Positions 11,293 through 48,036 of a DNA stretch of 64,000 nt are shown here, in pieces (the first letter of the stretch is position 1; each line of letters starts with the position of its first letter). The position numbers were made by a program, and so were the translations under genes. This DNA is from Convolutriloba macropyga (Eukaryota). Where the stretch lies: contig NC_134475.1 of NCBI RefSeq assembly GCF_964194025.1, positions 67,642,001-67,706,000 on the forward strand, read 5' to 3'. The notes under the pieces were generated by a model. The model saw only the letters and a list, made by a program, of their open reading frames with translations, had not been told where the DNA came from and did not search any database.

Positions 11293-11297
11293 ATTTT

Positions 11298-25056: not shown

Positions 25057-28000
25057 GCAATCAAAATTTGACTTCACCACTGTATAATGGAATTGGAACA
25101 TGTGTAATTTGGCCAGATCAAGTACGCATGCACTTACAATAGTAGGTTTGTTCCAATAAATCCGTTTTTTGCAATTTTCATTGCAGCCATGCTTTCTCCA
25201 AATGTTTTGAACGATTTAAAGTGAAAGTTTTGCGTTCTTTGTAGCACAATTTGAGCGTTTCGAACAATAACGACTTGATCACGGTTCCTTTTAGACTCGC
25301 ACGTTTTTCCAAACGCTGAGTTTTTCATTCCTTTATAGAAAACTTTGCCAAAAGCAGTACTGGCAGCAATCCGGAGACTTGTATTTAGCTCCATGTAGGG
25401 TCGCATCCAGTTGGCTCGCTCAAACTTTAATGCCCTATGAAATTTTGTGATTTTGAATTGTAGAATTGTGCAAGCCGATAATGTAGCTTGTAACGCTTTT
25501 TAGGCAACAGCGTTTGAACGAGTTTTGGCCCAGATAACTTTCCAGGTAAGTGCATCTGTACTTTCAAATTTTTCTGGTTACCGCTCGGCCAAGAATGTTT
25601 GATTTTCAATTTGGATGGCGGCAGAGGGTAATTTTGATGAGCTTCCTGAAATTCGGGTGGATAATCAATATCAACTCTAACGATGTATCCAAGCTGTGCC
25701 GTCGACGAAATTTTGAGCTCTTCATCGAGCTTGATGTGAGCATCTGGCGCAAAATTCTTCAAGGACAAATGATCGTTCTGCATTACGCCGCTGTAAAGGT
25801 GATTTGCGTCTAGCATCAACGCATATGTAGACGCATAAAAGTTCAGCAGATGGCAGTTGTTTGCTTGAAAGAGTCGTTGCCCATAGATTGAAGACACTCC
25901 TTCGCGCATCATGTTCTCTACAAGTTCAAGTTGTTCTCTCTCGGTTAGCAAAAGCAGGTCGGGTTTGCACACCTTGAGGAAGGCATCTCCTGATAAATTT
26001 GATGCTCCATAGTACTGTACGCAATCTAAAGCGTACGTGTAATAACAGATATCTCTGAAAGCTTCAAAGACGCACTAAAAGAGCAAAGTGTTACAGGTTA
26101 GATAAAGGTCGTGGTAGTCGCCGACGTTTTGACAAACAAGTTTTGAAAACACTGTTTGAGCGTGATTGTAGTCGGTTTTGCTGATAGTGATTTCACCGCC
26201 ATGCAATGTATTTTTCCGTTCCAATAATGGCGGCAATTCTTTTTCTTGAAAAAAATTGTTCTGATGTGATGTAGGAATAACCGTAAAAACCATTTTGGAA
26301 GCGAAGTTGAAAATCGCTATTGGAGTAAGATTCATACTGAGAGTATAGAATGTCAAAGGAATTCTCAGGCGGATCAACTACCAAGGACTCGAGTGATTGG
26401 AGCAGGAAGTTAAACGAGTCAATTGACCTTACGTATTTGAAGATGGGTACTTGTTGTCCAGACTCCGACTCAAAGTTTTTTATGAACACTCCGACAGAGA
26501 GTGATATATAGTTTTCGTCAGAAGAAGGTATAATTTCGAACTCTGTTTCCGGCTCAAAATCTGCTAGTGCAAGACATATTTGATGAATATCATACTTTTT
26601 GATATTGTGACCAATCATTGGCGTAAAGTTAGATGTTCTGCGACGAGTGTTACAGAGTTGATGCGCCCACCCTAGAAAAAAACCATTGTAGTGACAATGG
26701 TCAAGAAAAAGCTCAGCCTCATCGTTTATTTCGTTTTCATTGATCCAGCATCTTGTGTTATTTTCACGTGCTGGAACAGTTCCTCGGTAGGGTCCGTTGA
26801 AAGCTCGTTTTCAGTTGTAGATGTCACGCGCCAGTACGTGCAAAGTTTTTATAAATTCGTTCGAACAGTTGTCACCTCTTTTGAGTTAAAGTATACAGGA
26901 GTTGCGTTACAGTCTTCTACGGCTGCCATAGCATAACCACAAGGTTCAAGTTTTTGAATTGCAACTGTGTAGGAAGTGTTGCTTTCTTTTGGAATAACAA
27001 TTTCTGCTGCTGTATGTTCGCTGCAAGTTTTTACATGGTTTTGATAATTTTCTCGGTTTGTACACAAATGAGAACAATTTCGACAAATACTATGCGCTGC
27101 ATTGTGCGCTATACCTCTGAAGTATGCGACAAATCTTTCCAAATTCAGGATGGGAACATAGTGATGGGCATTCTCATCTTGGAGGAGAAGAAGGTCCATT
27201 GTTAAGGATTTGTTTGGTTTTTTGGAAACGTAAATCATCACCAAACGTGTTCCCTCGATTCTGTAAACAAAAGAGATTCATGAAGACCCAACCAGTTTCT
27301 AACATTTTGATTCTCTTAGCGGGAATATTTGATTTCTATTGATATTATTTAACAAACACTTACCCTTAAACATTGACGCGAACACCGCTGGCGTCTTCAA
27401 AGTATGGGATCCTGTTTATGGGCATCCGCATCTGATAGTCTACAACTGGCTGTCGTTCCGCATTCTTGTACGTATCTGGATTCGTCTTTTCAATTCCCGA
27501 TCCACCTTCTGTCAGTAAATTGTTTCGATTTTTGATATGTTACGCGGCTACCAAGCATTACACGAAGCAGTTGTGGTCAAAATGGTTTCGTATGTTGAGC
27601 AATGAACGGCATCCGTTCAGGAAACCGGGTAGAGCTATATATGACGATGCATGCACGGGGACCAAGGCGGCTGTCTTGATTTCCAGTCTGTTTACTTTGC
27701 GTAGAATCCATCCACTGCCTTGTGATGTAAACATGAAGAGAAGATTTAACATCTTACTCAACAACTTGAAAAAATCTTCGTTGGAGAGTCCGTCCAAGTA
27801 CACTGTAGTCATTTTAGAGCTAGCAAAGATTTCGATAGTTTGATCTTCGGTTTCATTTTCGTTTTTTTCTTTGTAGATATCTAGAGACGCAAGGAAGTGA
27901 ACTCTTTTAGCTGCATTTGAAACTTCGCTGTTTATAATGTTAATTATGATGTCTTTTGTTCAGCATGAACTCCATGAGGTCTTGGTTGTCCTCCGTTTCA

Positions 28001-28210
28001 TCAATAATGAAAACTTGAAGTGCTACTTGAAAAACGGATTCTGTTGGTCTTCTGCTTGTTTCACTAGTTCTCGAGGGCAGTCCATGTTGACCTCTTATGT
28101 GTGTGGCAAAGCGATCAGCAGAATCAGAGCAAATGTAGCAGTACAGGCAACATTGTACGAACGGGTAATGTCGGTTTCCAAAATGTCGTTCGACAGTTCA
28201 TGAGAAACTA
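25057..28210 (-). pseudogene. Protein-primed family B DNA polymerase (pPolB), truncated before motif C
   Basis: N-terminal C2H2 remnants (CCLYC...THIRGQH); SQGSGW...SSYIALP...LNIRN..DHNCF; HHYVPI; LDHCHYNGFFLGWAHQLCN; GHNIKKYDIH; IDSFNFL; LDANHLY; KNSAFGKT; KPTIVSACVLDLAK. The sequence breaks at ~25057, just before the expected YxDTDS. Confidence 0.93.
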
Positions 28211-28289
28211 ATAGTTGAATCAATTGAAGATAAAATGGTTTTGAGTTCGAGCTAAATCAAAACTTCCACTCTCTAATCTAAAAATAACC

Positions 28290-28720
28290 AACGTCCTGAT
28301 TGGTTGAATTTGATAACATACTCAAAAAGAATTTTCTATGGACAAAGTTTCTTTCGAATTAATTAACTAAAGGATTACACAGGTGTGAATAATACCTTGC
28401 GCAAGTTTCGCAGCCCAATTAATGAAATTATTAGATTGATGAAGCTTTAGAAACAACTATTTTATCCCGTAAGAAGATGTTAAGCATTTTATGCAGATTT
28501 AGTCCCTGCTTTATGCAAATTCTATCATTTGCCAGTGAGGGCGTAGATCATGTTGTATGCAAATCCATTTGCATATATGATTGGTATTCTGGCCAAAGAG
28601 GGCTACAATCATGTCTTTTGCAAAGTTGAATTGGAACGCAAATACCAATGTTTTGCCGTAATAGCCGGGGAGACATATGCGTAACTTCTATGCAAATTAG
28701 AAGTAATTTCTATGAAATGA
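28290..28720. promoter_or_regulatory. Octamer (ATGCAAAT) cluster upstream of pPolB
   Basis: Exact octamers at 28513, 28557, 28567 (reverse) and 28690. Near matches at 28491 and 28636. ATTGG (CCAAT) boxes at ~28299 and ~28580. Confidence 0.6.
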
Positions 28721-30202
28721 CGTGTTTTATCACGCCCTATCTGGTTAAATAGCTTTATTGGTGTTGTAGTGCAACTGAATATCTCTTTTTAGGTTTAAAA
28801 AAATGATTATTACCGTTTTTTAATCAAAAACATCGAAAAAAACGTTTTTGAAAATAACTTTGAATTTTAGTATAACAACTCTCATCAAGGATTACTGGAG
28901 GCTGTAGCAGAATCAGTTGAGGGTTGAAAAACTTTATAAAAGTAAGAAAAGACGTTTTTAAGAATTGGAAAAAAATTGATTCGCATTTTTTAATGGAACT
29001 CATACTTGCCGAACAGCTAGCTTCATCATTCTTAAGATCAAAGTTTCACAGCGTGCGATTTTATTACGACTACTTTTTACAGAAGTGTGAAAAAAACCTC
29101 GGGAATAAAATTTTTCAAAACATCTGGCAGCCACAAGTTTCCAATTGAAAACAGGTGTTTGCAAAAACCCTGTTTCCGGGGTTTTTTTGGCTATGATCAT
29201 CATAACGTTCTATTTCTGTTACTGGGCCTAAGGAAAAACTCATTCAGGGTATTCTTCAGCAAAACAACCACATCATTAGTTTTTTTTCAGTTTTTCTGAA
29301 AAATTGACCTTTTTTTCAGAAAAAAGTCTTTTTCCTCTAAAAATTTATGTGAGGTCTTTTTAAAGTAACACCTTCAAAATGTAGTAAAAACATAGGGATA
29401 ACATTGAAACGTTAAAAAGTAGCTTTCAAATTATCTGAACAAGAAAAATTTTCAAAATTTGAAGTTTTCACAAATTTTAACTTTTTTCTGTTACAGATAT
29501 GAAAAAGTTAGTTGGGACCAAAAATTTAGAGCGTGTTGTTTTACATCATGTGAGATATTTCTCAATAGTTTCCTCATCAGTCTTCCACTTGTAAGGGGAT
29601 AAGCAAAAGACAAAAATATATGATTGAACATAGACTTTGTTCTCTGCGACCCGGAAATTGTGCTCCCTCAAAATTTTTGTTCAGAGGTTTATTGTAGAAC
29701 ACTTTGCGTTCAGAAAAATGCCTCCTTAAAAATTTATCTCTTTTTTGTTTTCATTGTTTTTTTTGTTTTTTCTTCAAAAATTTCAATTTTTCAGGAAATT
29801 TGTTCAAAAAATGGTTTGAAAATTAGCAAAGACCTATCACATTGCAATAAAGTTGTTCAAGTCTTATTTTGTAGACCATATTGTGTTCGTAAAACCATGT
29901 TTATACATGATTTTTCATTTTGCAATTATAATCACTTTTTACAGGTTTTCGAAAAAAAAGTTTCAACTTGGCATAGTCCTTCGATACTTTTTTCAATTTT
30001 CAAAAACCAAACTAATAATACTAAATTTTTATTTTGTACACAACGAACATTTAATCTCCTTTACAAAGTTGAAACAAATTAGTCATAGAAATTGACTCAA
30101 CATTTTTATAAAACACAATTTTTGAATACTCTAATAAACATATTTCCACACCATCAAACTGAGAGTTTGATTTTCCTTTCAGATTTTCTAATCAAAGAGT
30201 TT

Positions 30203-30950
30203 TCACGGGGACCTTCTTTTTCTTGGCGCACGAGTAACTTTTGGCGTATCGGAGTTGTCAGGTGATGTTGTTGTTGTTGATACCAAGCTTGAACCGGTCT
30301 CCAAAATAGTTGTTGGTGTCGTCGAGCAAGACGGTGTTCTGAAGTCGGTCGCATACAAATTTTCCATCAATTGACTTGCAGTTGGTAGTGAGCCGAATTT
30401 CCAAGCAAGTTTCTCCTCTGTAACGGGTGAAAACAGAGACGGTGAGCTTTCGGGAGTCCCAGTGGCACTATGATCAGAAGTTGGCGTTGAAACACATCCT
30501 GGTGATGGTTGTGGTGACTCGGGAGAATGCGGAAGGCCCAATAAATCGGCCAGGACATTACAGGCTTGAACTACTCCCAACTGATTTTCGAAAAAGGGCA
30601 CGCAGTCACAGTCATATTTGTATAGAATAGTTCGAGTGTCTTTTGTCCAGTGTCACCATGTCATACGGGTACAGAGGATGTGCTAACGACAAAGGTGGTG
30701 CGAATTCGCCTAAAGTGACAAAGGTTCCACCGCAATCTTCACTCTCGTTTTTGTTCGGCAAGGTTGCAATGAATTTAATAAAGATCTTGGGTATCATAAA
30801 GTGCTCAAGAGTTGTCCAATTCTCATTTTTCTCCTTTCTCGTTTGTCCTTTTCTGTTGGAGAAAAACCACCAAGATTTCGTAAAACGTTAGGTACAAAAT
30901 TGTCCACTCCCAGACATTGCTTTGGTTATTCAGGTTATAGAAAGACATTT
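30203..30950 (-). pseudogene. Polinton accessory ORF with S/T/P-rich C-terminus and basic tail
   Basis: ORF fragments 30823-30950, 30612-30797 and 30203-30601 join across frameshifts and end in TPKVTRAPRKRRSP. Confidence 0.5.
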
Positions 30951-31843
30951 TCAGCGTTTGAAGACGTTTGAAGAGATAAAAATGTTTTTCTTGAACAATT
31001 TTGGAATGCTTTGAAGAGAAGATACGCAAATTGAATGTTTTTGATAATTGAACAAGAAGAAAGTTTTTAAAGTATTTCAAGCGCAAGGATATTTGTTCAC
31101 AAAATTTAACTTCTGCTCTGTCAGTAGATTTTCAATGAAGTTAGAGTTGCTGTTTCGAAACTGAAAAGAAATATAATGTAGCGGGGAATTTACCCCCATG
31201 TAGTTTATGTGAGTTAACAATGTAGGTACAGTGGCAGTTCTCTTATCTGCCCCGGCACACCCAAAGGCCAATTATTTTGGCCCGGAATTTTGATCGAAAT
31301 ATATGTTTTTTATTGCTCTGACTATAACAGATTTAGGTGCAAGCCTTAAAACTGCACATGTATTAACAAAATTTAATTGAACGCCACTTGCTTTTCATTA
31401 ATTTGGACCAAGTCAGATAAGTATACCACACACGTGTAACCCACGCATGCCGCGCGCCTGAGGTGGGGAGCACGTTGCTTGTAATTGAAACCATACTTTG
31501 GTTCCTTGTTACGATTGTTTTATAACACTTAACATGTATTCCCCTCTTATCAGTCAGTTTTCTTGAAACTCATGGTGATATGGTATAATACCAGTGTGTA
31601 TTTGTGAATGTGGGTTAGCAAGGCTATGCCAAGAAATTGCCCGTGTTGTTCTATATAAAACTCCTCGATATGTAAATATTAAGGAAAATACACGGACCTC
31701 TGAAGTCATTGGTATTTGTAAATCACGTGAAACACCCTTATCAATACCGTTTTGAAAAGAATACTGAACGTTTGAATCATTTAACTTTTCCCTAACAGTT
31801 GACTACGTTCTACAACAAAGTTTTCCAAGCTAATTTGATACTT

Positions 31844-32100
31844 ATGCCTTTCACTGCAAGCAAAGACCAAAAAGTACGGTGATTGCTATTCTGATCTATC
31901 TAAAACCGAAAAAAGATCGATAAGAGTTACTCTCAAAACCTAGGAAAACACCAGGACGTATGTCTTTTTGAAACTTTTTAAGAGAACAGAGAATAGCCCT
32001 TACAACAGAGGAATTTGACAAACTTATTAAAAGAAGTGGGAAGATACGAAAACTCGGTGCCAGAGTCAGAAGGGAAGATAGAGACTTCTGTTGCTAAAAA
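31844..32100 (+). pseudogene. Putative PC4-like ssDNA-binding protein remnant
   Basis: KRSIRVTLKT*ENTRTYVFLKLFK / EQRIALTTEEFDKLIK resembles the PC4 pattern (RVT..F....YV.I...KGISLT.EQW..L). TATATAAAA at ~31653 lies upstream. Confidence 0.4.
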
Positions 32101-32359
32101 AACCGGTTGCTAAAAAGCCTCAACTAGCAGAAAAAGATTCTGGATACAAATCGGCGTCCTAGTCTTCGGCTTCTTCCGCAGATCAATCAAAATGGTTGAA
32201 GCAATGTTTGAACGATTGCCGGGTTACTTCAAACAATTTCAGAAGGCGTTCAAATTTTCAGTTTGCGATAAAAAACCGATGAGTTAAATAGTGTAAAAAA
32301 ATATACTGTGTGTGGTTAATTTGAAAACCCCCTTTTGCACTTTGAAAACTAGCCATTAC

Positions 32360-32855
32360 CATGTTTTGGTGGATACATCAGACGTGACAAAGTCTTCAGA
32401 CAAACCAAAGTTTTAAAAAAAGCTATACAGTGCCTTGTCTCTACACGATTTTGTTTGTCCATTCAAATACCCTAGGGCTGAAGGGAAAAATTTTCAACAA
32501 CCTGTATTGGCGGTTGAATACAACAAAAGTTCGAGCACAGACTCCCACTCAATTCAGAAACAGTTACCAACTTTCTCTAACGTTGCTGCGAATCAAAAGG
32601 TCATGAACAACAACGTGACCTTGAATGAATCCAATCAACGACGAATACAGCAAGGAAGCAGCTCATTGTTTCAACTTCATCAAAAACTATACCAAAATTG
32701 TACTACAAAGTCCAATAACCAATAAACTCAAACAGATAGCTTTGCAAGTGAATCTCAAAAGAGATTTCAAAATATCTTGTCTGGGCCACACTCAGGTGCT
32801 TTCTGCCAAATAATGGACATATTTGTGAGCGGATATGGTAACTTGCTTGTTGATT
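32360..32855 (+). pseudogene. Unidentified Polinton accessory ORF remnant
   Basis: Overlapping ORF fragments 32435-32725 and 32625-32813 inside the Polinton; no motif recognised. Confidence 0.35.
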
Positions 32856-32945
32856 CTGATGTTTTGTTTGTGCGCATAGTGTATGAAGAGAAAACTAAAT
32901 ATTGAAAAAAAATTATTTAGCTAAGCAGAGTTTTAGTAGAGTTAG

Positions 32946-33389
32946 TTAGAGCATCATATGAAGCGCAAATCGAATCAAATCAACATCACTCAATTTTACA
33001 AATTCTGTTTTGTTTTAAATGTAATGAGCAACATAAATACAAAATAAGCCACACAAAATGGAGTTTTGTGTTTGTATTGGTTGATTTCTAAGCAATTCAT
33101 ACACGCTTTGAATATAAAGCGCAGCAGAGGCCAGTCGGTTGTACAAACTTTTGTATGATGTTAGTTTCTGTCCAAGCGGATCAGCAAAAATGTAACTGCG
33201 ATTCTTCCTACACAAAAGTGTCCAATGTGTTCCAATAGAATCAGAGCTGGATACCTTCACAATAATGAATGTGTTCTGTGATAGTTCCAAGGAAAAAATA
33301 TCAGCTGCAAAGACACCACAAAATTTGTACTTGCTACACCACAGAAGTGTACATGCTTGAACCAGGTTGTTTATTTCGTCTTCATCCAT
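32946..33389 (-). pseudogene. Adenain-family (C5-like) cysteine protease
   Basis: GTHW (His), IFADPLG (Asp), QTQNSILCGLFCIY (Gln/Cys). Probable premature TAA at 33015-33017, after which the frame continues to ~32946. Confidence 0.92.
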
Positions 33390-34720
33390 CAGTTTGTCAG
33401 AATATGATTTTTCGAAACTTTCCGAGCCGAATCGACGAAAATAGTGCGCGCTTTCTTGCTAATAATGAAAATTTCTATATTACTTGGCAAGGCAGCTGAG
33501 AATTTGAGTTCAATTTAAATTGAATAATTTGTGAGTTCAGGGTGAATAAAATCATGCGACGCCTGCTGAATGCTAGTGAAATCAAACACCATAATAAAAT
33601 GGCTCGGGTACTCAGAAAATTTACTTCCATGACCATTGTCAATATAGCCTAAGTCTGATATTGTGTTGAAATATAAGCGTTTTTCATCAGTTGTATTTAT
33701 TGGACTGTCAGCAACAGTAAGTCCATTTTGGAAATACATATCTGCTGCAGATTGAATTTACGAAAGTGGAAAGGATTGAGTTGTTTGCTTCCTAAAAATG
33801 CTTCATTTGTGTTAAGGCATATAGTAAGACGTCGAAATGGCTCCCTGCTGAAATCATCCTCTTGTTCTAACTTTCTAGCTATAAAAGCCATTGGAAACAA
33901 GAAACGTTTTAGTTACGGTCTCCAAATATGGATAAGACGCTGGACTTGACAGTAAAATTTTTTCAATCGCAGAAACCACGTCATCGTTCAACGTCATTTT
34001 TCTCACATACAAATTAGCTTCTATAATTTTTATTTTGTAGGATTTTGCAGCATCATCGGAAAATGTGACAAAATCATCTATTGATCGTCGAAAAGAAATT
34101 CGCAGCGTCACACCACTCAAAAGATGCCAATCGCAAGTAAAAAAATCTACAGCTACTTTTCCATAGAAAGTGTTTTCGCCTGATTGTCTACCCAAAGCTT
34201 TTCGTCTGTTAACTTCAGCTGCCGGTATTGCCCCGGGGTTCTCTTCGTATGTATAACCTTGGCAGGCCAAGCAAGTTGCTTTTGTATCTTTGTTATGAGA
34301 AAATTCAGTTTCAATGAAAAATTTTTGAGCATAATTTTCATTTGCATCTGAAATTTTAAATCCGTTGGCAGATACTGTGCAGTCAGAAAAGAGCGAATGT
34401 AAAACATTAATGCAGAAGTAAGGGGCGTCTGTTTTGGTTACCTCTGCTGCAGCTCCAGCGTCATATTTCAAATCGGCTTCAGAAGCCTGAACTATTTTGC
34501 ATTTGATTTCCAGGAATATTTTTTGTAGGTCAATAAAATTATTTCTGTCTCCAGCCACCTCAAATTCAAGCATGGGTCCGTTAGGGCTGTACACCGGCCC
34601 TACTTTTTGACAGAAACTACCATGAAAAGTGAAAAATAGCGCTGGTTTTTCAATCCAATCCAGGGAACTATGTGTTGCCTCTGTTGGTAACATATTACCG
34701 ATCATCTTAAAGTCTATCAA
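33389..34720 (-). pseudogene. Major capsid protein (double jelly-roll, PY)
   Basis: GPMLEFEVAGDRNNFIDLQKIFLEIK, NVLHSLFS, EANLYVRKMTL, NPFHFRKFNL, FIMVFDFT. Frameshifts near 33890, 33735 and 33515. Confidence 0.9.
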
Positions 34721-34774
34721 AGAAGTCCGACCGACTTCTTTTTGGCTGTTTATTTTTTGAAATGACGAAAACGT

Positions 34775-35100
34775 TTAGACCGTCTCCGATTCATTTGGTT
34801 TTGTCCTCTCATTCGCAGTGCTAAGGAGTCTCCATTTTGCTTTTTGACTGTATTTGAAATAAGGTTTTTCAGCGCCTGCTTTGCGGTTTTTTTTGCTGAC
34901 AACATCGACTAACTCTGGTACGCTTTGTAAGAGAAGTTCGTTCTCGACTCGTTTTGCTGCGGATAGAGTGAATTTTTGTGCAACGGCAAAGCAATTCAAC
35001 CTATGCTACTCGCTAAAGCTCCAAAGCCGCTTCCTCTTTGTCTATAGTGTCCAGAAAAATAAGGCAACGGAGATGCTTGATTGGTGCTTTACGATTCCAT
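34775..35100 (-). pseudogene. Basic core protein precursor (adenovirus pX/pVII-like)
   Basis: Translation MES*STNQASPLPYFSGHYRQRGSGFGALASSIG*IALP.../AAKRVENELLLQSVPELVDVVS. Its position between the minor and major capsid genes is typical of Polintons. Confidence 0.75.
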
Positions 35101-35104
35101 TGTT

Positions 35105-35993
35105 TTACTCACCAATTTTTTTGAACTGCAACGTCGATATTACTTTATCAGTCGCTGAAAAGAGGAGAAATTGACTTGTTTCAGTACGTAGCTCTATGGC
35201 AATTGATTGAATCGTATTTGAAAGCAATTTTTTATAGTCCAGATTTGACAAAAACTATTCTATGTGTTAGCTCAAGTTGACACACGCTGCCGTTTTTCAG
35301 ACGTTGTTTTGAATCAATGACATCTAATAACGGCGCCTTAGCATCACCAACATACTGATACTGGATAATATTTGCGTAAATGCATATTAGGTGTTTTCCC
35401 GCGCACATATCGGAAGGGAATTCTCCATAATAAGCTTTTGTCTCATCGTTCTTCATTAAATAATTTGATGTAGCTGTATTCATTTTGTACCCAATATGTA
35501 CACCATGTTTACCTGGAATTCCTGTAAAACGCTCAATACTGGGCATTTTTTCACCAGGAAACGTGATTGTCTCATTTTTACCAAAATGAGTCTCGTATTT
35601 TCCAGTACTCTTGATTTCGCGAAACAAAAAATTGGGTAGTCCAACTGCTCGCTTGAGAGTAAATAGTAGTTGAGCAACCGTGTCAAAGTTTCCAGTCATG
35701 AATGAAAATTTTTCTCCACTGTAAGGTGAGGAGATGACATTGGCATCAGATGAGAATCTGTGTGAGTACTCGAAACCCTTGAGACTATATGCTATCAAAT
35801 CTTCATTGACAATATGCTCAATTTTGGTCGGAAAAATAATTTCACTTAGAGCTACCCTCCAGTCTCCAAATAGTCGAATTTCATCGTTTAAAAAGTTTCT
35901 GAACAAAGCTAGTGTGTTTTGATCAGAGGTCTCCATCGAAGTGCTAGAACTAACATGTACCGTAAACTCGTCTTCGAATCGTTTACTTCCCAT
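35105..35993 (-). pseudogene. Minor capsid protein (penton, PX)
   Basis: FTVHVSSSTSM..QNTL..FRNFL...GDWRVALSEIIFP; IYANIIQYQYVGDAKAPLL; after a frameshift, IQSIAIELRTE...TLQFKK. Confidence 0.9.
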
Positions 35994-36911
35994 TTTTCAT
36001 AGAAGACTCTAGTTGAAATTCGGGTTGATAGAATTTACTCTGGATAAGTTCTTTATCCGCGTCAATATGAGAATATGGGGGAGGATGAAATGTTGGGATA
36101 GATGCGATTTCAAATAACTTGTCGGTAAATGACTGTTTGTAGCCTTTCCCGAACGTCTCCTCTTTTTCCACTATGCGCACAAAATCACCAATAAAGAATT
36201 TGGGTTTTTGAGAAGTTGCTGTATTTGCAGTCAACGACACAAGCCTTGGAACGTCTTTCTTTTTGACGTTGTTCGGAGCGAGCTTTATTGTCCAATTTAC
36301 TCTAGAATTGATTGTTTTAACAAACGCGACCAATTTTTCTAGATATGAATAAGTCCACTTTTCTTTTGAGTATCTTTAGATTAAGTTTTTCAACGATCTT
36401 ATATTTCTTTCCGCAAAAGCAGACTTTTTCTCACTGGACGAAGGCACCTAGGAACTCTGTGACATCATCAACCCAAATTTATTCAGGTTGTTTATGCTTG
36501 ATCATCTTTTTGAAAAGCTGTCTCTGTGGCATATTTTGTTTTCAGTGGCTCAACCCTGAGATACCTTGACAAACAGTCAACAGCCACAAGCACATGTTTT
36601 ACACCAAAGTTGTATTTTGCAATTTTATCAACATATGCTAGATCTACGGACCAGATATCATTTATGTCGTTAACAACAATTTTAAGCCTTGGAAACCTGA
36701 GGCGACGTGAACGGTATTTGTTGAAGGATGGTTTTGTTTCCAAGTACATTTTATTTTTCTTCATTGATAATTTACTCAAATTTTGCGAACTCGTTTTGCT
36801 TCCAATTGACGCAGGACCGTTTAGATAGAGCTTGTCAAGTTTTCGCACATCATCAATAGAAATCCCAGACCTTTCTATGCGCCTCTTCCGCTGTCTTCTC
36901 TTTATCTTCAT
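35983..36911 (-). pseudogene. Polinton retroviral-type (rve) integrase
   Basis: IWSVDLAY...VLVAVDCLSRY..VEPLKTK; IWVDDVTEF; AFAERNIRSLK; KFFIGDFVRI..ETFGKGYKQSFT. Confidence 0.92.
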
Positions 36912-37628
36912 CGGTTCTTTGCTTTGCGTTTTTTTCTTTGGTTCAGATCGCCTTCCTTATTGCTCTTTTTTTAATTTTTGCTTTGGTTGTTTTGATAGGG
37001 TTTTCTTTTCATCTTCACCATAAAACTGATCAACAACTTTTTTTGCGTGAGTATTATAAACCAAGTCAGCTGATATATCAAGTTCACTCAAGATTTTGGA
37101 TTACTTTGACAAGTCATTTTTTTGTGGGTTGTTGTAAATTGTAGAAAAAACTTGTATTATCTACTCCTTGAGGCTCACCGTCAATGTGCAGAATGTTAAT
37201 CTCTTCACTATTAGAAACGCTTTTTGAATTTAAAATTTTTTTAAAGATATTTGCAGCTCTTTTGGTTTTGTTTTTATCCACTAGTTTCAGTTCTAACATT
37301 ATTGAGTCAAATGCTGAATCCCTCTTTTTTTCACTATTGGCTCTATTTCACTGTCGTCAATGAAAAACGGTTCGGTTTTTACATCATCTGCATCACTTGT
37401 TGCATCGCCGCTACTCTTTGTTCTCCTGGTTGACCCATTAAGGTTAGTGTCCGCATCTTGTACTTTTTTCTCATAATTTTGTTCGAAATTTGGATTAGTC
37501 TTTTGTAGGATTGCTAACTGAGTTGCTTTTTGCTGATAAATTGGATTATCAAATTTTTCTTCTTCGTTTGTTGGGTTTTTTGAAATGAACATTCGTTTGG
37601 GGATTAAAACAAACTCTTCTGCATCCAT
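36890..37628 (-). pseudogene. Polinton PZ-like protein remnant
   Basis: MDAEEFVLIPK... and ...ANIFKKIL...LHIDGEP; conserved position between PW and integrase. Confidence 0.5.
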
Positions 37629-37649
37629 TATTCGACCTTTAAGTAAATA

Positions 37650-37927
37650 TAGCACTACAATCCCAACGCTTGAATGAGTTCTCGTTTTTTGGCTAAAATG
37701 TTTCGCTTTTTCTCCATAATTGTTTCCTTTGATAATAATTAGTGAAATGATTTTTCCTGATTTTTAAGTAACTGCTTATTCACTGGAACGTTGCCATTGA
37801 TCACATTGAGCATACGCTCACAGAGAAAGGTAATAAAGGTATTTGGTGCTTGTTCGAGGAACTTCCTGAAGTTGCTCTTGGGCAGCTCGGGCATTAACTT
37901 TAGCATACATAACTCTTTCTCTCTCAT
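37650..37927 (-). pseudogene. Polinton PW-like small protein
   Basis: FLCERMLNVINGNVPV matches the characteristic ECxLNxxxGNVP motif. Overlaps the ATPase 3' end. Confidence 0.7.
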
Positions 37928-38560
37928 CTACCAAAGTAGTGATAACCGCTTTGGAGGACGGTAGATAAAAAATTGTTGGACCTGGTTGTACAATATTTGA
38001 ACAAAAACGCAGGGAGTCTGATGTTTTTGGATCTAAGTCAATGAGTAAGTGTCCAAAAGGTTGTTTTGTGGCAAGTTGATAGCTTTCCTTCACAAAATTT
38101 GTATTTTTCAGCTGTTTTCCAACATAGATGATCTGCTGTATGCCTATAGGTGATTTGAATAAAATAATTTGCGTGTTGTTCGGATCAGTCGTTAGCGACC
38201 ATTTACTCTGCTGAAACAATTTATGTTTAATATAAATCACACTAATGTTTCTATGGCGTCCGGCAGTCGCAAGTTTTGAAAAACTCTTTGTCATTGAATA
38301 TTACTTTACACGAATCGTCAAACACAAGCAGACAATTTTCTAGCTGAGAAATGAATTGGAATCAAGAAAACTTAATGAAAAAAATATTCGCTCTATTGTG
38401 CTAAACTTTGGCTGCTCGTGTTGATAGAAGTAGTAAATAGAACTAAATTTTGGATAGAAAGTGTTTTTCAATAACATTTGAAATATAAGTTCTGTTTTGC
38501 CACAACACGAAGGACCGCAAACAGCCATAAAAAGCCTATGGCAAGTGGATATAATTTTGT
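37818..38560 (-). pseudogene. A32-like DNA packaging ATPase
   Basis: Walker A GPSCCGKT, Walker B LLVFDDS, arginine-finger GRHRNISVIYIKHKLFQQSK; frameshifted. Confidence 0.93.
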
Positions 38561-38890
38561 TCTTAGCTTTGGATTTGGAAGAGCGTAGTCAACTGTACAC
38601 GAAAACAATGAAAACCAAAATGTTGATTCTTCACAACCAAGTTGGGAAAACAGAAGCTTGGTTAAAGAAACAGCAATAAGGAAAAGTATTATTAAAATAT
38701 GAGTAAAATAAACAACTTTGGAACGTGGTAGCCGAGAATAAAACAATACTTCCACAAACGCCTCTCTTGATTTTTCTCATCAAAAACAAAAGCATTCAAA
38801 CCCCTAAATTAGCGGAGTGTATCTGGTCTTCTCTAACACTCATTTGAATATAAGTTATTTGAGAAAATGAATTAACACTCAGTTTTTAGT

Positions 38891-39190
38891 TTAAATTGCT
38901 TTTTTGTTAGTCTCTCTTTCAATCCAAAAGAATCCATAAGTAGTATATCTAGAGTCTTTGTCGTCTTCCTTGTAAGTCACTGTATAGTTTGCCTGCATGC
39001 CGTAACCACTTCCATAGTAGACAACAGACTCTACGTTGACTTCACTGACCAACATTTTATTTTCATTCTGGATATTGTCTTTGTCCAGAGCTACTTGAAC
39101 TGGTGCTGGCCACTTGGGCGTAGGTAAAGATGTAAGTTTCAGTTTTCTCATATTCTGTTGTAACGACATGGTACATTTGAAAATGTTCAA
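38891..39190 (-). CDS. Unidentified Polinton accessory ORF
   Basis: Open 99-aa frame co-oriented with the Polinton gene block; no motif recognised. Confidence 0.4.
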   Translation of the reverse strand: MNIFKCTMSLQQNMRKLKLTSLPTPKWPAPVQVALDKDNIQNENKMLVSEVNVESVVYYGSGYGMQANYTVTYKEDDKDSRYTTYGFFWIERETNKKAI

Positions 39191-39399
39191 GTAATGAAAA
39201 ATATTTAATCAGCGTCTCAATTTCCTTAGTGTTGCAGAGAATCTGTCGTTTTCAAAGAATATTCTGTCCCCGTGTTTCTATTTTCTCAACTTTTAAAAAA
39301 AGCCAATGTCAACTGATTTTTTTTCGTTATGCAACTGCATACTGTCAAACTTGGAGATAAATTCACTTGAAGAACTGACGGAGCTGCCTTCTCCACTCG

Positions 39400-39670
39400 A
39401 CGGCTCATTGGATGACAGGGAGATCCAATAGAAATACAACTGAGCTTTCCTTTTAGCACAATGTTTCCCCTTTTGCTTTTCTGGTAGGTAGGAAGAGTGC
39501 AAGTAATATTATCAATTGGCAATTTAATATCTTCAATTTTTGGACATAGAAGAGTTTCCAATTCTTTTACCTTTTTCTGCAAGAGAGTTTGAAGTGATTC
39601 TGTTTTCTCTTTCCCTTTGGCATAAAACTTCCCTAACAAAAACCGAAGTTTAATGGCGACAAAAATTTGT
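39400..39670 (-). pseudogene. C-terminal half of a DEDD/DnaQ-like Polinton accessory protein
   Basis: FYAKGKEKTESLQTLLQKKVKELETLLCPKIE...C...KHCAKRKAQLYFYW pattern. Confidence 0.55.
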
Positions 39671-39679
39671 GAAAGAAAC

Positions 39680-39982
39680 CCGGAAGGATAAGTACCTTTA
39701 TGAGTGTAATCTGCTATAAAATCCGATGCGTCGTGGAGTATTGCATGAAGTCGTAGCATTTTGAACGATTTGAAGTAGTTGTCCGGCGACGAATTATCAA
39801 TTCCAATCAGACTACCATACGGTCTCAGCTTGAATGTGTCCTCAAATCAATTTCAGGATCAATTTATTGACAAGCAGCTAGAAATTACAGAAACCTTTCA
39901 CCGTACTTTGGATCAGTGTTCTTTATCTCCAGATAAATTTCATGAATATTTTTAGATCAATGGTTTCTATCGTTTTGGCCAT
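39680..39982 (-). pseudogene. PLA2-like (HD motif) Polinton accessory protein remnant
   Basis: LRPYGSLIGIDNSSPDNYFKSFKMLRLHAILHDASDF; the LHD helix resembles a phospholipase A2 active-site HD. Confidence 0.45.
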
Positions 39983-40138
39983 CTTTTTCATCAAAGATGA
40001 TTCTGGCAAAATGAATCCTAATCTTATCTCCTAGGATTGACCACTTGAGCTCCCAAACAAATTATATTCACACAAATACATTTAGCAAAAGTACCACTAA
40101 CATGAAGGATCTCTCCTCTCTCGCACTCGCGAAATGTA

Positions 40139-40550
40139 TATACCAACTATAAGCCGCCAGGCAAATACATGTAGCGCAATTACCGCTTTCTTAACATTAA
40201 TGATTTTCCCTAAGGGGTCAGGGATCCCCCTCTGCCGAACGGATCTCGAAAGGATCTCCCCCGATCTTCCTGTATATAAACGATACTACTATTGCCATTG
40301 CGACAATTCTACGAAGAACTATTCTGAAGTTGACCAGTACAATGAGAACGAGAGTGCAATTCAAGAAAATTGACAAAAAAGAAAAAAGACAAAAAAAAGA
40401 TGAACAGAGCCAAGGAAAGACCTCGGACCAGCAACAAAAAATTGGCATAGGCCAGACCAGAAAATAGACCAAACTGTAAAGATATTTGGGCAAGATTTTT
40501 GACGGGTTCCTGAGGCAAAACACATAAACATTGTTCAATAGTTGGGTATA
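40139..40550. mobile_element. Small non-autonomous DNA element with short TIRs
   Basis: TATACCAACTAT (40139-40150) versus ATAGTTGGGTATA (40538-40550). Confidence 0.45.
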
Positions 40551-40618
40551 AACGTTAGTTTAAAAGTTTTGTATAAATATATTATATAATCAAAATATAA
40601 TATATTTGGCTGCGTCAG

Positions 40619-40917
40619 TGAGCTGCGATGATAACAAAATTGACCGACTATTGGTGAAACTGAATCAATACAGACATGTGTTGGAGATTCCAGAATTCAT
40701 GTTGAAGATTTCGATTGGGTTTACTGTTTCTATAATGGCCTACGAGAGATATGTTATGGTGTGCAAACCATTCAATTATGAAACTATTCTCTCAGACAGA
40801 AGAAGAATGGTCGCCTATGTTGGCTATGCTTGTTTCCTTGCCTTATGTGGTGTTTCCTACTACATCTCTCAAGTCAGATTTATGGAAAACAACCCTTGCC
40901 TTTTCGAGATAAACGAC
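40619..40917 (+). CDS. Class A (rhodopsin-like) GPCR exon encoding TM3-ICL2-TM4-ECL2
   Basis: IMAYERYVMVCKPF is the (D/E)RY..(V/I)C.P signature, followed by a hydrophobic TM4. Candidate acceptor TCAG at 40615-40618 and donor GAC|GTAATT at 40917/40918. Confidence 0.8.
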
Positions 40918-40931
40918 GTAATTAAAACCAT

Positions 40932-41276
40932 CCCAGGTTGAGTTGCCAGACAGAAGTGACCTCTAATCAGACTGATTTGCGCTCAAAGTGTGCTCGAAGC
41001 TGTCTCTGATCAGAAGACCTTCCCGGACGGAAGTGACTGCCAATCATACCGAAATCAGACCACTGTCCAGACTTTTGTGCGACCCGGGCCCCAACCAATT
41101 CCAGACAATTGTCCGGATGTTTCCGAGCCTGAAATTGCTGCTGATCAGGCCATTTTCTACGTTGTCATACTGCTGACAGGATATTTTGGTCTGGAATTTT
41201 GGTCTGGAAACACACCGTGTGCGAGTTCGGCTGGGGTCTGATTAGAAGTCACTTCAGTCTGGCACCTCAACTTGGG
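40932..41276. mobile_element. MITE with ~40-bp TIRs, flanked by AT
   Basis: CCCAGGTTGAGTTGCCAGACAGAAGTGACCTCTAATCAGAC versus GTCTGATTAGAAGTCACTTCAGTCTGGCACCTCAACTTGGG; internal CCAGAC subrepeats. Confidence 0.85.
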
Positions 41277-42539
41277 ATAAGCGAGTAATGATAATCACGA
41301 TGGACAGATATATCAATGAAGCTGTAATCCTAGAAGCTAAAAAAGTTCTCAATGCAAAAATCACCACTCATCAGATAGGACCGGGAAGAGTTTGCCGCTA
41401 CAAAAATTTTATTAAATTTAATCACTTTTATCACAGCGTTCTTCCGCTTTTCCTTTGTTGGCACCTTTAAAAGTAACCCCCACTTACAGTCCGCGTGGAG
41501 AAAAGGCGGTAGTTTTTATAGAAATTCTTAAAGAAGTTTTAATTTTGGGTCGTAAACTCCGCTCTATCGCATTCAAATTTTCTGAGAAGAAAATAGGTTT
41601 TGAATATGACTACGACTAATGCATTCAAAAGTAATAATTTGGTTTTAGGCGGGTACGATGCCTTGATTGCATTTAGAATTTAAAGCCGCCAGCCATTTTT
41701 CAGAGACTTCCAAAAACTCGTCCTGCATTGATAGAGTTAAATCTAGGACAACACATAGACATTTAGCTTTTTCATTATTGTAAATTTTGTAGTTATTCAG
41801 AATAAGTTCAAGTATACGTTCATTAGAAATTTCTGTTTTGCTTATTAAAAAATGAATTTTGTTTTGAACGTATTCAAATTCAAATAGTTACTATCAAGAT
41901 ATTAAATTACGTTTTCAGGACAAGTTTGAATATACCTTTCTTCTTTGTCAATTTTCGGGGAAAATTAAATCATCTGCATATTGAGTTATTCTGCAGCCAC
42001 TTGCGTTAAATTACTTCTTTTCATTTAAGCATTTAATAAACAGCAGAGGGCCAGACAAGCACTGTTCTCCATTGTAGACCTTAATACAGATTGACCCAAT
42101 CAGATTCGATTATTCACAATCGTCTTGTAAAAACGTTTAGAAATAAAAAAGTTAAGAAGATCGAGTGGTGATTACTCAAAGTCAGGAAGCAAAATTTTCT
42201 CCAGGAGCATTTTTTGGTTATGTGACTCGAAGGTTTTCAAAAGGTCGATTCAAACTACTGTATTTTTTTTATATCTTATTTCAAAGAAAACCCAAACTAA
42301 AATGATGTGTTTCAATGGGAGCCGTGGTCATTTCACTAATTCAAGTTAAGCCGTTTGTCAGACAGATTTGTGACCCCTTCCTACATCTGCCGGTTCGGTG
42401 AAATAACTATAATATCAAGTTATATAAAAAGTAACTAAACTCACAATTCCTAAAAAAGATTATCACTTCTCTGAAATGTATGTGCCAAACGCTTTGATCA
42501 GTGTCACTCGATAAGGTGAAGACAAATTTTTATTTTTCA

Positions 42540-43933: not shown

Positions 43934-44192
43934 TGTCACATTGACCGCCTTAAGTATACTCAGAAAATCATTTTGCTTATTTGAATTAATGATGATGATA
44001 CAAGCGTTTAAGATAAATAAATCAGTTCTCAGTTTTTTAGTTTTTTGTGTGTTGAAATTCGACTGCTTTTCTCTGCTTCCTTTTGTTTTGTCACTTCTTC
44101 TCTTAACCATTGAAGGTCTGTTTCGGGCAAAGATCCATAATAGTGCATAGATGTTCTCTAAATAATTGGGCATCAATGATGTATTGATGACA
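43934..44192 (-). repeat. 3' LTR of BEL/Pao element
   Basis: About 98% identical to 51340-51598. Confidence 0.96.
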
Positions 44193-44675
44193 TAGCCGGC
44201 CCCATTTGCAGGATTGCAAAGAATAGTAAAGTAAGTCCATAAAATTAAAGACAATTCTTGGTTGAAAATGCAAACTTGGTGACCCATTAACAAAGAAACA
44301 AGTTTCGAGATAAACGAATAACTGACGTTACGCAAGAAAATCAACTCACGGATTTCAATGAACGTTTTCGCGAAGATAAACGAAGTACGTGAGAATAAGC
44401 GGTTAAAAAGCGTAATAAACCGATAAACGCAAAAAAATAAAGTAAACATTTCGCAAAACTGCGGGTCCGCAGAAAATTTAATGAGGAGGTCAAAATATAG
44501 ATGTCCGAATGCTCCGAGGGGAGTAACAGGTTGCCACGGTGTAGTAATTTTTCTACCCGCGCAGAAAAAGCAGAGTTTGAGTACAAATTGTCATGGAAAA
44601 ATTGTTCTTTTCCTAATACCAGAACTTACAAAGAGACGAACCTTGTAATTTAGTGTTTGAATCAATGATAAAAAA

Positions 44676-47600
44676 TTAGTCAGCTAGAACTTTGCTTAAT
44701 CTAACAACAGGGTGAATTTTTTCCCTAAATGCGGTTTTTAGTTTAACGGATCTGACAATTTGGTCCGAACTAGGATATACTTCAATGACTTTCGCCAGTG
44801 GCCAAAGACCTCGAGGCGTGAAATCCTCTAAAACCCAAACTAGATCGCCTACTTGTAAATTCGGACAACCTTTAGTCCATTTCGAACGTTTCTGCTGGTT
44901 TGGGATATATTCTCTAAGAAATCTGTTCCAGAAGTGTTCGGCCAAGTGTTGTGAAGTTCTCCAAGACTTTGAGATTGTAATCTTTCTCTCGGAAAAAACA
45001 CCAGGTGGAAAAATAACAGTGGGTCTGCCCCAAAGAAAATGGTTTGGTGTTAGGGGAAGTGGATCATTAATGTCACTCGAAGTGTATGTGAGGGGACGAG
45101 AATTCATGTTAGATTCTATTTCGCAAGTGAAGGTAGACAACGTTTCATGTGTTAGTGTTCTTGATCCAATGACCTTGTACAAAGACAATTTGAACATCTG
45201 AATTAACCTTTCCCAACTGCCACCAAAATCTGGTGCAAGGGGAGGATTAAACTTCCATTCAATTTCAATATCAAGAATATGGAGTTTAGAGGCCAATTCC
45301 TTTGATGCTCTGAGTGCTTCGATACCTTTCTTTAGTTCCGAACAAGAGCTGACAAAAGATTTCCCGTTGTCGGAGAGAAATTTTTTTGGCTTTCCGCGGC
45401 GACTAATGAATCTGCAGATGCAATTCATTGTTGAGTCTGTAGACAGGTTTTCTGCTATCTCCAAGTGAACTGCTCTTACCACCAAGCAGGTGAACAGAAG
45501 TACGTAGCGTGTAGCGTGTCTGCCGCATTGAGATACGGGGAAAGGACCTATGAAGTCGAGTCCTGTCGTCGCAAAGACAAAGTGGTGCTCACTTGGTAAC
45601 CGCTCGCATGTTAGATCAGACATTTGAGGTTGCTGGATTTCCTGTATCATTCGCCGACAAGGAATGCATTGGCGGACCGTCTGCCTAACGACAGCTCGGC
45701 ATTTTAAAACCCAATAGTATTGCATCAGGAGGCAGCGCGTTTGTTCAACTCCTGAGTGAGTGTTAGTAAGGTGAAAATTTTTGATGAGCAGCTTCACAAT
45801 TGGGTTTAGACCATCCAGAATGATTGGGTGTCGGGCAGTCTCCAAAACCATTGCCTTAGACAACCGACCTTTGGCGCGGAGCTGATCATTATTGTCAACA
45901 TACGGACAAAGGTCTTTCAAACGACTTGATGCTGAAATTTCCTTTCCCTTACGTAGAGCAGATATTTTGTCTGCAAAATTTTCAATCTGCGATACCTGGA
46001 TCAGATATCTGTACGCAAAAGTATGATGAGAGAGAGCCAAATGTTTGGTTCGCTTCTTGCAAAGGTCGCGGAAAAAGAAGCAGTACGCAGTCACTCTTAT
46101 CAACCGATTCCAGTTGCTAAAACGTGTAATATCTATTACACACCCTTCAGTTGACAGTTTAGGGGCTTCCAGTGGCTGTATTGAGAATACCAGTGGGTTA
46201 TGCTTCAAGAGATCTTGACAAGGCCACTCTTTTTCTTCGGAGCGGAGAAATGATGGTCCACTCAACCAACGAGAAGTTGCATTCATCTGTCGAACCTCAT
46301 AGCCTCTTGAGCCCTCATCAGCGGGATTATCAGAAGAAGCGATGTAGCGCCAATTGAGAGATGAAGAGACGTCGAGAATCTTTGCTAGTCTATTGGCAAC
46401 GAAAATTCGATGCCGCATTTCTGGAGTTCTCAACCAATGGAGTACAGTTGTACTATCGGACCAGAAAAAATAATTTCCGATTTCCAAATCTTGCTGTTCT
46501 TTGATAAACTGAGCTAATTGCGCGCCATACACTGCCGCTTGCAACTCCAGGTTTGGAATAGTCATCCTCTTGATCGGAGCTACTCTGGCTTTGCCCATCA
46601 TGAACACTACATCAACTGTTTTATCAACGTACTCAGTTCTTAGATAAGACACTACTGATAGAGCGCACTCTGAAGCGTCTGTGAACGTGTGAAGAGCTGT
46701 TGACTGAATTTTCGTGTTTCTACGGAAGAGAGCACGTGGAATGCTGATATTCTGATAAGTTGGAAGTTCGTTTTTGAATTGGAGAAAGTCTGGGAACTGC
46801 TGAACTTCCAGAGGTGCGTCCCATTGTGGACCTTTATTCCAAATCGCTTGCAATATTTTTCTCACTCTGATTGTTAAAGGGGCTATAACGCCAAGGGGAT
46901 CAAAAATTGAAGCGACGAACTTCAAAAGTTTCCTCTGTGTTGTGAATTGATCATTGGGGAACCTTTTGAAAAGCCTTTTGTCAATGATGTACTCGTCCGT
47001 GCTCGCGTTCCACGGTAAACCCAAAACTTTTTGAGGTTGAGGTGATGGTAGATCAGGCTTCAAAAGATTTTCGTTTGCGACGTTTTTCAAGAACTCGTCT
47101 GAGTTAGAGTTCCACTTTCTGAGGTTGAAACCACCAAGTGAAAGACACTCTTTGGTGCTGTTCATAACATTTACAGCACTTTCAACGTCTGCTGTCGAGA
47201 TATATAGGTCGTCCATGTAAACATTACGCTCAATGACGTGCCAAACTTGAGGAAATTTGTCCTGAATGTCACGTGCTGAACGACGAAGAGCGTAGGACGC
47301 TATGCATGGGGAAGATGTTGCGCCAAAGATATGACGTGTGTTTTGATACTCTTCGATTTTGCCATTGTGATTCCAGAGAAACCGAAGAAACGCACAATCA
47401 GAGGGAGCAACTTTAATTTGCATAAACATTTGCTCAATGTCTGCTGAAATTGCCACTTGTCGCTCGCGGAATCTTAATATGACTCCCACAAAATTACTCA
47501 ACAAATCGGGTCTCTTCAAAAGGTTTGAATTCAAGGATTGACCTTGAAAAACACTGGATGCATTGGTGACTCTCCTGATTTTTCCGGGTTTGTTTTCATT

Positions 47601-48036
47601 TGAAACGGGATGATGAGGAAGATAAGAACATGCTGTTTCTTTGTCTGTAGCTGGATCAACTTTGACAACATAACCATTTTGAAGATCTTTCTGGAGCGTC
47701 TCCTCGTACTTACTTTGTAGATCTGGTTTTGTTGAGAGTTTTTCGTTTAATTGCTTTAACTGTTTTTCTGCTAGCTATCTGTTGTTTGGTAACTTGGCGT
47801 TTTCCTTCCAAAGAAGGCCTATTTCGTAGTGACCATCAGAAAAGTTTGTAGTCGACTCAAAGATTTGCAGAGCTTTTTCATCATTTTTAGACATAGCCCT
47901 TTTTGATGAAGCTAAACCGTAGTTCTCAACTTTTATCCACTGTTGTACTTTTGTGAAAAGTTCATTGTCTAGATGAGGATGAGAGTTGATTTGTGTTTTG
48001 AACACTGGATTCTGTTCGTCTGCTGTGACGCTAGTT
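44676..48036 (-). pseudogene. BEL/Pao Pol: RT, RNase H and integrase (952-aa open segment 44676-47534; in-frame stop at ~47775)
   Basis: ADIEQMFMQI, FGATSSPCIA, NVYMDDL, HTFTDASE, KRMTIPNLELQAA, GLDFIGP, SDNGKSF, GGSWERLI, LTPNHFL, TPRGLWPL. Confidence 0.95.

Follow-up and report, generated by a model that had tools for sequence, protein, structure and literature searches.

A mutationally decayed Polinton/Maverick copy, truncated at one end, from the acoel Convolutriloba macropyga

A 64-kb window of the genome of the acoel Convolutriloba macropyga, by which we mean the whole stretch of DNA analysed and to which all coordinates refer unless another locus is named, holds what is very probably a decayed Polinton/Maverick element at 25054–40290. 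The element lies on the minus strand and is read here from 40290 downwards; its genes are on that strand unless stated otherwise. The surviving part measures 15.2 kb, with the end on the ATPase side complete and the end on the polymerase (pPolB) side truncated. No long open frame is present in the region, and the short ones lie mostly on the minus strand. Relatives of the element were taken as natural loci from ENA assembly ERZ25071359, the same assembly as the window contig, ctg31243_80x_l of 89,925 bp; another contig of this assembly matches C. macropyga chromosome OZ077305.1 at 100% identity over 3332 bp. Over its whole extent the element is colinear with three of these loci (L003, L005 and L006) at 85–91% nucleotide identity, and with two others (L001 and L002) at the protein level; in tblastn searches, the called genes of L001 and L002 matched in colinear order between 25057 and 39953, with E values down to 0.0. 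Searching in this way with the genes of the relatives, we could place 17 genes colinearly in the window copy. Four small open reading frames (ORFs) are followed by a packaging ATPase, two further ORFs, a retrovirus-like (rve) integrase, a penton-like gene, a small basic ORF, the major capsid protein (MCP) and a cysteine protease; past the protease come two ORFs on the opposite strand, a homologue of L001 orf251, a 2-kb spacer, a C2H2 zinc-finger gene and pPolB.

The MCP gene occupies 33392–34705 and is broken by two frameshifts and one stop. The longest stop-free piece of the window, which derives from this gene, has 550 relatives in the protein collection, the best of which (P0001, 436 amino acids) is 88% identical. 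Many of these relatives are full-length proteins of 436 amino acids, and the sole named matches are C. macropyga proteins labelled 'F54H12.2-like'. In a library clustered at 50% the family has 5638 representatives at E≤0.001. A capsid profile searched against the sequences in the PDB gave no match, and only comparison of folds succeeded. For this, an AlphaFold2 model of the natural relative P0001 was generated from an alignment of 47 diverse homologues, with a predicted score in the local distance difference test (pLDDT) of 90.8 and a predicted template modelling score of 0.88. Foldseek matched the model to the MCP of Sputnik (3j26_A, E 1.3e-17, TM score 0.67) and then to those of PBCV-1, SGIV and mavirus, while matches in BFVD included a bracovirus protein, adomavirus LO7, and adintovirus and MELD virus proteins. 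With this predicted fold, assignment of the MCP of the family as a double jelly-roll capsid protein is well supported.

A Pfam scan of 30 stop-free window pieces from the region returned only Peptidase_C5 above its cut-off, together with weak matches to rve and Endonuclease_7, and the other genes therefore had to be identified through their relatives. The adenain-like cysteine protease (32964–33389; one stop, no frameshift) was recognised on the window's own stop-free piece, where Peptidase_C5 scores 23.8 bits against a cut-off of 21.3; its L001 homologue scores 27.7 bits. The packaging ATPase, of the A32/FtsK type (37848–38561; two frameshifts, one stop), is 74% identical to the ATPase of L001 (tblastn E 8e-107), which matches Pox_A32 at 27.6 bits (cut-off 22.8). 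Its stop-free pieces in the window gave no Pfam match. A homologue that matches both Adeno_IVa2 and Pox_A32 is found in L009 (IMG/VR UViG_3300040792_000067, 12.3 kb), a contig from the environment that is listed as viral and whose capsid protein is only 30% identical. The rve integrase (35986–36869; two frameshifts, two stops) is 77% identical to that of L001 (tblastn E 1e-121); here rve reaches 36 bits in the L001 protein (cut-off 32.6) and a weak 18.2 bits in the stop-free piece of the window.

The pPolB gene (25054–27199) is both broken and truncated. It spans residues 78–687 of the 949-amino acid L001 protein, is 43–44% identical to the polymerases of L001 and L002 (E 1e-119 and 1e-103, respectively) and carries four frameshifts and two stops over 641 aligned residues in addition to the terminal truncation. 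The L002 polymerase matches DNA_pol_B_2 at 45.8 bits (cut-off 25.8). Across relatives that are 44–77% identical to the window genes, Pox_A32, rve, DNA_pol_B_2 and Endonuclease_7 thus all lie above their cut-offs, and we regard the protease, ATPase, integrase and pPolB assignments as well supported. The Endonuclease_7 match concerns a segment near the polymerase N-terminus with the pattern CxxC...DHCH, similar to Endonuclease_7/HNH nucleases, which is present in L003 (19345–20571), in L001 (17107–19956) and in the window pPolB. It scores 25.3 bits (cut-off 23.6) in the N-terminal part of the L003 polymerase, and the window piece matches weakly. Judged by eye, the segment sits between the presumed Exo I and Exo II motifs; the two polymerase lineages are about 40% identical. 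Sequence searches of the PDB with the L001 pPolB and with the N-terminal part of the L003 polymerase found nothing significant. L006 carries three tandem copies (9252–16106) of a segment of about 2.4 kb that spans the first two-thirds of the polymerase gene.

Upstream of the MCP is a penton-like gene (35108–35993; one frameshift, no stop), the presumed minor capsid gene, or PX. It is 73–83% identical to proteins of 294–295 amino acids in the relatives, and homologues lie upstream of the MCP both in L009 and in those metagenome loci that hold the two genes. PX has been described one gene upstream of the MCP (PMC4028283). The penton or minor capsid identity of the 295-amino acid gene is accordingly presumed from its conserved position only.

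A terminal inverted repeat (TIR) of about 150 nt survives at the ATPase side (40140–40290, the start being approximate; minus strand) with the terminus 5'-AGTAGTATCG. This region is an inverted match, at 81–87%, to the repeat at the opposite end of L005 (12227–12391) and of L006 (17160–17315). The terminal bases at 40290 are identical to those at position 5310 of L003, 12393 of L005 and 17317 of L006, and include AGTAGT, the (AGT)2 end motif. No pair of inverted repeats is present in the window, and the single repeat was recognised only through comparison with the relatives. At the other side, the homology of all relatives ends at 25054 and the second terminus is absent from the window copy. 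Judged from L005, about 1.2 kb has been lost at the polymerase end, comprising the C-terminus of pPolB and one terminal repeat. The surviving 15.2 kb compares with 16.9 kb for L002 and about 17.6 kb for L001, within the range of roughly 15–20 kb for Polintons. The spacer at 28198–30211 belongs to the element, matching L003, L005 and L006 at 84–87%; it has no conserved ORF, and no gene is called there consistently in the relatives. A tandem duplication of about 340 bp is present in the spacer of L003 (~16250–16930), the sequence being single in the window, L005 and L006. Neither tRNA genes nor Rfam families were found by scanning the 64-kb window as a whole.

The relatives fall into more than one subfamily. 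L003, L005 and L006 belong with the window copy and each has breaks of its own; within this four-copy subfamily the window copy is the most diverged, and L003 and L006 are 95% identical. L001 and L002 form a separate subfamily, far younger in appearance. All six core genes of L001 are uninterrupted, and its inverted repeats extend over at least 451 nt at 96% identity. L002 is a 16.9-kb element (4042–20937) with TIRs of 198–290 nt at 96% identity and ends that read 5'-AGTAGT...ACTACT-3', flanked on both sides by a perfect 6-bp target-site duplication (TSD), CTTCTA. Copy number is high: the MCP forms 550 clusters at E≤0.001, some with hundreds of members, and the penton-like protein 237. Members of the family are spread over separate contigs and chromosomes, and MCP genes of the family lie on C. 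macropyga scaffolds of 75–89 Mb. Relatives of the capsid family at 40–60% identity also occur in environmental metagenomes. In the more distant L009 the order is ATPase, two other genes, integrase, penton-like gene, one other gene, MCP and protease, the same block as in the window. At the level of Pfam, a chromodomain is present in the L009 integrase and missing from those of the acoel, and the L009 polymerase gene is upstream rather than downstream.

Breaks were counted for each gene against the closest open reference by a frameshift-aware protein-to-DNA alignment that had been checked on synthetic sequence. Breaks affect 16 of the 17 genes and amount to some 30 frameshifts plus about 22 in-frame stops, numbers which are estimates that vary with the reference protein and the penalty settings. 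There are also three internal deletions, each of about 0.1–0.3 kb, relative to all close relatives. The sole unbroken gene is the homologue of orf86. The window copy is dead, an ordinary genomic fossil of a known kind. An initial annotation, made from the letters of the window, had described a co-oriented block from ATPase to protease, a pPolB and at least six accessory ORFs, and stops or frameshifts in nearly every gene of a dead copy. The block is real, on the minus strand and colinear with the relatives by tblastn, the polymerase is accompanied by at least eight accessory ORFs common to the relatives, and the decay is as was stated. The same annotation ended the element at 40100, which has to be moved to 40290, and saw no TIRs; it was right that the window holds no pair, but one terminal repeat does survive. 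Its expectation that younger intact relatives might exist is borne out by the open core genes and long TIRs of L001 and by the TIRs and perfect TSD of L002.

The four small ORFs ahead of the ATPase all have homologues in the relatives. The outermost (39694–39982; two frameshifts, two stops; tblastn E 2.5e-24) corresponds to L003 orf134 and L002 orf137, a family with no Pfam match in the relatives. It is followed by a homologue of L001 orf197 (39323–39696; E 1e-42) that has one frameshift and no stop and is partly deleted, so that only 63% of the reference is covered; it too is without a Pfam match. The homologue of L001 orf86 (38903–39169; E 1.7e-25) has neither frameshift nor stop and covers 97–100% of the reference. 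The last of the four, a homologue of L001 orf93 (38564–38802; E 2.6e-27), carries one or two frameshifts and no stop. The maximum Kyte-Doolittle mean over 19 residues is 2.65 in the L001 orf93 protein, and the hydrophobic segment of the orf93 relatives probably spans a membrane.

Three further ORFs lie within the morphogenetic block. At the position of Maverick PM is a homologue of L001 orf99 (37631–37927; no frameshift, two stops; E 3e-41), which is fused with the next ORF in L002 and L004. The neighbouring ORF, at the PZ position, is a homologue of L001 orf256 (36856–37628; three frameshifts, two stops; E 9e-55, 48% identity) and has no match in Pfam or the PDB. Between the penton-like gene and the MCP, at the PW position, is a small, very basic ORF (34698–35100; three frameshifts, three stops; E 3e-35) with no Pfam match. 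Its L001 homologue has an isoelectric point of 11.6, with 26% lysine plus arginine and 5% aspartate plus glutamate, a composition which, taken by itself, would suit a DNA-binding virion protein.

Past the protease, two ORFs run on the plus strand. The first is a homologue of L001 orf222 and L003 orf203 (32192–32881; E 3e-44), with two frameshifts and one to three stops depending on the reference, and has no match in Pfam or the PDB. The second is a homologue of L001 orf110 and L003 orf137 (31799–32183; E 1e-12), with three to four frameshifts and one to two stops, again by reference, and no Pfam match. Back on the minus strand, the homologue of the acidic L001 orf251 (30212–30948; two frameshifts, no stop; E 5e-44, 46% identity) belongs to a family for which neither Pfam nor the PDB gave a match. 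The C2H2 zinc-finger accessory gene (27387–28197; one frameshift, three stops) is a homologue of a 327-amino acid ORF in L003 and L006, in which C2H2 Pfam matches are below threshold and PDB matches are to the fingers of CTCF (E 9.5e-5). A PDB sequence search with orf344 found nothing significant.

Outside the element, a fragment of a rhodopsin-type G protein-coupled receptor (GPCR) lies at 40564–40938 on the plus strand, just beyond the surviving Polinton terminus. It scores 30.1 bits with 7tm_1 (cut-off 30.5) and covers only profile positions 72–144; no further 7tm pieces were found nearby. The fragment is either an exon of a host gene or a pseudogene beside the insertion. Directly after it is a MITE-like (miniature inverted-repeat transposable element-like) pair of 43-nt inverted repeats (40930–40972 and 41236–41278), 91% complementary and 263 nt apart. 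A BEL/Pao long terminal repeat (LTR) retrotransposon occupies 43934–51599 on the minus strand. Its 260-nt LTRs are 98% identical and its open pol frame of 1032 amino acids contains Peptidase_A17, RVT_1, Integrase_H2C2, rve and DUF5641, accompanied by a gag-like DUF1759 ORF; this element looks much younger than the Polinton copy. At the other side of the window are remnants of another retroelement (2700–6250, minus strand; RVT_1 44.2 bits on an open piece of 250 amino acids). The intervals 7153–9465 and 11594–12520 hold a strongly negative GC-skewed satellite, whose 31-bp unit is repeated about 70 times, and CA-rich microsatellites that adjoin runs of N at 11430–12926.

Taken together, the pPolB, rve integrase, MCP, ATPase and protease genes, the size and the AGTAGT terminus, with the TIRs and 6-bp TSD of the relatives, bear out the Polinton/Maverick identity given in the initial annotation. 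We are confident that 25054–40290 is a germline copy of a Polinton/Maverick, of polintovirus/adintovirus type, in C. macropyga, and that this copy has decayed by mutation and lost one end. Several observations weigh against this reading or parts of it. The ATPase, integrase and polymerase assignments rest on the relatives, since the window's own pieces lie below the Pfam cut-offs or have no match. For the penton-like protein, the AlphaFold2 model obtained from a shallow alignment reached a pLDDT of 38.6, and two profiles, the second more diverse, found no match in the PDB or Pfam. The equivalences with PM, PZ and PW are positional, without support from homology, the flank beyond 25054 has no Pfam match and no match to any sampled related locus, and the counts of breaks shift with the settings as stated above. 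These points qualify some labels of the initial annotation. Its minor capsid gene is placed by conserved position only, and its PW, PZ and core protein lack support from homology, the gene called PW there corresponding by position to PM, and the core protein to PW, on the map of PMC8097293.

Comparison with L001 divides the window copy into two unlike halves. From ATPase to protease the identity is 73–77% in protein and 78% in DNA, whereas nucleotide similarity ends right past the protease and the remaining genes retain 27–46% protein identity; against L003, L005 and L006, both halves are equally similar (85–91%). The subfamily of the window could be a mosaic generated by recombination, in which the morphogenesis and integration half is near the L001/L004 lineage and the replication and accessory half, from past the protease to pPolB, came from another Polinton lineage. 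Such a history would add to the Polinton/Maverick reading and does not exclude it, and exchange of pPolB between Polintons has been proposed for nematodes (PMC10748475). However, polymerase and accessory genes evolve faster generally, as in C. briggsae, where median identity is 92% for the MCP and 77% for pPolB1 (PMC10748475); unequal evolutionary rates could therefore give the same half-and-half picture, and no donor lineage was found whose right half matches closely. We consider recombination a possibility worth keeping in mind, somewhat short of being the probable course of events. The missing end raises a different question, namely whether the real locus is complete and its truncation an artefact of assembly. 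The coverage label of the window contig is 80x, compared with 37–61x in the other contigs sampled, which could mean collapsed repeats, but the 25 kb of the window past the break show no additional match to the element and the copy is heavily decayed in any case, which makes an artefact quite improbable.

The origin of the element as a decayed germline Polinton/Maverick may also be disputed. Adintovirus, MELD virus and adomavirus capsid proteins are among the best structure matches in BFVD, and endogenised adintoviruses are reported from all eumetazoan phyla (PMC8502044), so that the copy might be the relic of an exogenous adintovirus endogenised once, and not of a transposon-like Polinton that multiplied in the genome. 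The very many copies, in several subfamilies and on separate contigs and chromosomes, fit repeated integration instead, and we think a single endogenisation unlikely; the two labels overlap heavily, and the choice between them is mostly a matter of name. A further reading assigns the element to the algal symbiont, as a polinton-like virus integrated there. Tetraselmis symbionts live in C. macropyga (bioRxiv 10.64898/2026.03.06.710013), integrated polinton-like viruses are present in the genomes of Tetraselmis (PMC9356565), and the source assembly could include contigs of cobionts. Against this, MCP genes of the family lie on the chromosome-scale C. macropyga scaffolds of 75–89 Mb noted above, and the window itself holds the BEL/Pao retrotransposon and the rhodopsin-type GPCR fragment. 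Such retrotransposons and receptors are, to our knowledge, animal features. The end motif, the TSD and the order of the modules are likewise those of animal Mavericks. Given these scaffolds, neighbours and Maverick features, a Tetraselmis origin was rejected as extremely improbable.

How an intact member would work can be proposed from the established biology of the family. The protein-primed polymerase would copy a linear double-stranded DNA genome from its TIRs, and the rve integrase would insert that genome into host DNA, making the 6-bp TSD. The MCP, the penton protein, the A32/FtsK-type ATPase and the adenain-like protease would then build, fill and mature an icosahedral particle. With its broken genes, its deletions and the loss of its polymerase end, the window copy is capable of none of these steps.

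The value of the fossil is that it leads to relatives in the same genome with all core genes open. We found no paper on Polintons or Mavericks in acoels, and the C. macropyga genome note makes no mention of them; with no published description found, the large population described here, with several subfamilies, would be a first record for acoels and in Xenacoelomorpha. The initial annotation had supposed a lineage that was host-specific and probably undescribed. Host specificity holds in part, given that capsid relatives at 40–60% identity occur in metagenomes and that the 50%-clustered library holds so many representatives; the lineage counts as undescribed only insofar as we found no paper on acoel Polintons, and the presence of such integrants in all eumetazoan phyla had already been stated by Starrett et al. 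2021 (PMC8502044). The nuclease segment bears on a published claim. According to Jeong et al. 2023 (PMC10748475), an HNH domain is peculiar to the pPolB2 found in terrestrial nematodes and oomycetes, and a His-Me-finger nuclease insert in acoel polymerases touches on that account of its distribution. One relative with six open core genes and MCP clusters with hundreds of members raise the possibility of activity. It is a speculative and rather doubtful proposition that C. macropyga, a culturable acoel, combines a Polinton/Maverick population that is still active with an EndoVII/HNH insert, to date reported solely as a synapomorphy of the pPolB2 of nematodes and oomycetes. If it were true, the acoel would be useful for seeking expressed Mavericks and their particles, and the history of the insert would have to be rewritten.

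Among known systems, mavirus-type virophages share with these elements a double jelly-roll MCP, an A32-type ATPase, a cysteine protease, an rve integrase, pPolB, TIRs and, if the presumed identity in the acoel is right, a penton protein, and the mavirus MCP entries 6g43, 6g44 and 6g45 match our capsid model with Foldseek E values of about 1e-14. Capsid identity, however, is only about 9–10%. Virophages are dependent on a giant virus and have protists as hosts; nothing here points to a giant-virus partner. Adintoviruses, of the proposed Adintoviridae, and MELD viruses have in common with the acoel elements an association with animals and the combination of adenovirus-like virion genes with an rve integrase and PolB (PMC8502044). 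They are known in both free and endogenised form, whereas the acoel copies sampled are all flanked by host DNA, and none of the adintovirus accessory genes named in PMC8502044 was detected here. Nematode Polintons, which carry pPolB1 or pPolB2, are likewise virus-like, with MCP, minor capsid protein, ATPase, integrase, protease and pPolB; in them, too, the polymerase is far more diverged than the capsid and a His-Me finger nuclease is embedded in the polymerase (PMC10748475). They differ from the acoel elements, in which no gene of the size of a fusogen was seen.

The Mavericks of vertebrates can be compared in gene order and ends. Most of them have two modules on opposite strands that converge, whereas in the acoel elements a single strand carries all core genes and pPolB is placed at the far end, away from the ATPase. 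The accessory set also differs, consisting in the acoel of a C2H2 zinc-finger gene, two opposite-strand ORFs and orf251, and so does the host. In common are the core set of pPolB, ATPase, integrase, major capsid protein, protease and the minor capsid protein presumed in the acoel, and two runs of gene order, one from ATPase through PM to PZ and the other from integrase through minor capsid protein, PW and MCP to protease, with PM, PZ, PW and the minor capsid protein equated by position (PMC8097293). Vertebrate Mavericks are described with (AGT)2//(ACT)2 or (AG)3...(CT)3 ends and a 6-bp TSD (Barreat & Katzourakis 2021, PMC8097293), and the acoel elements share the 5'-(AGT)2//(ACT)2-3' ends and the 6-bp TSD and resemble them in length, at about 17 kb, and in TIRs that measure a few hundred nucleotides. 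In both hosts most copies are degraded fossils beside a few that look intact. The end motif, the TSD and the gene sub-modules of vertebrate Mavericks are conserved across Bilateria.

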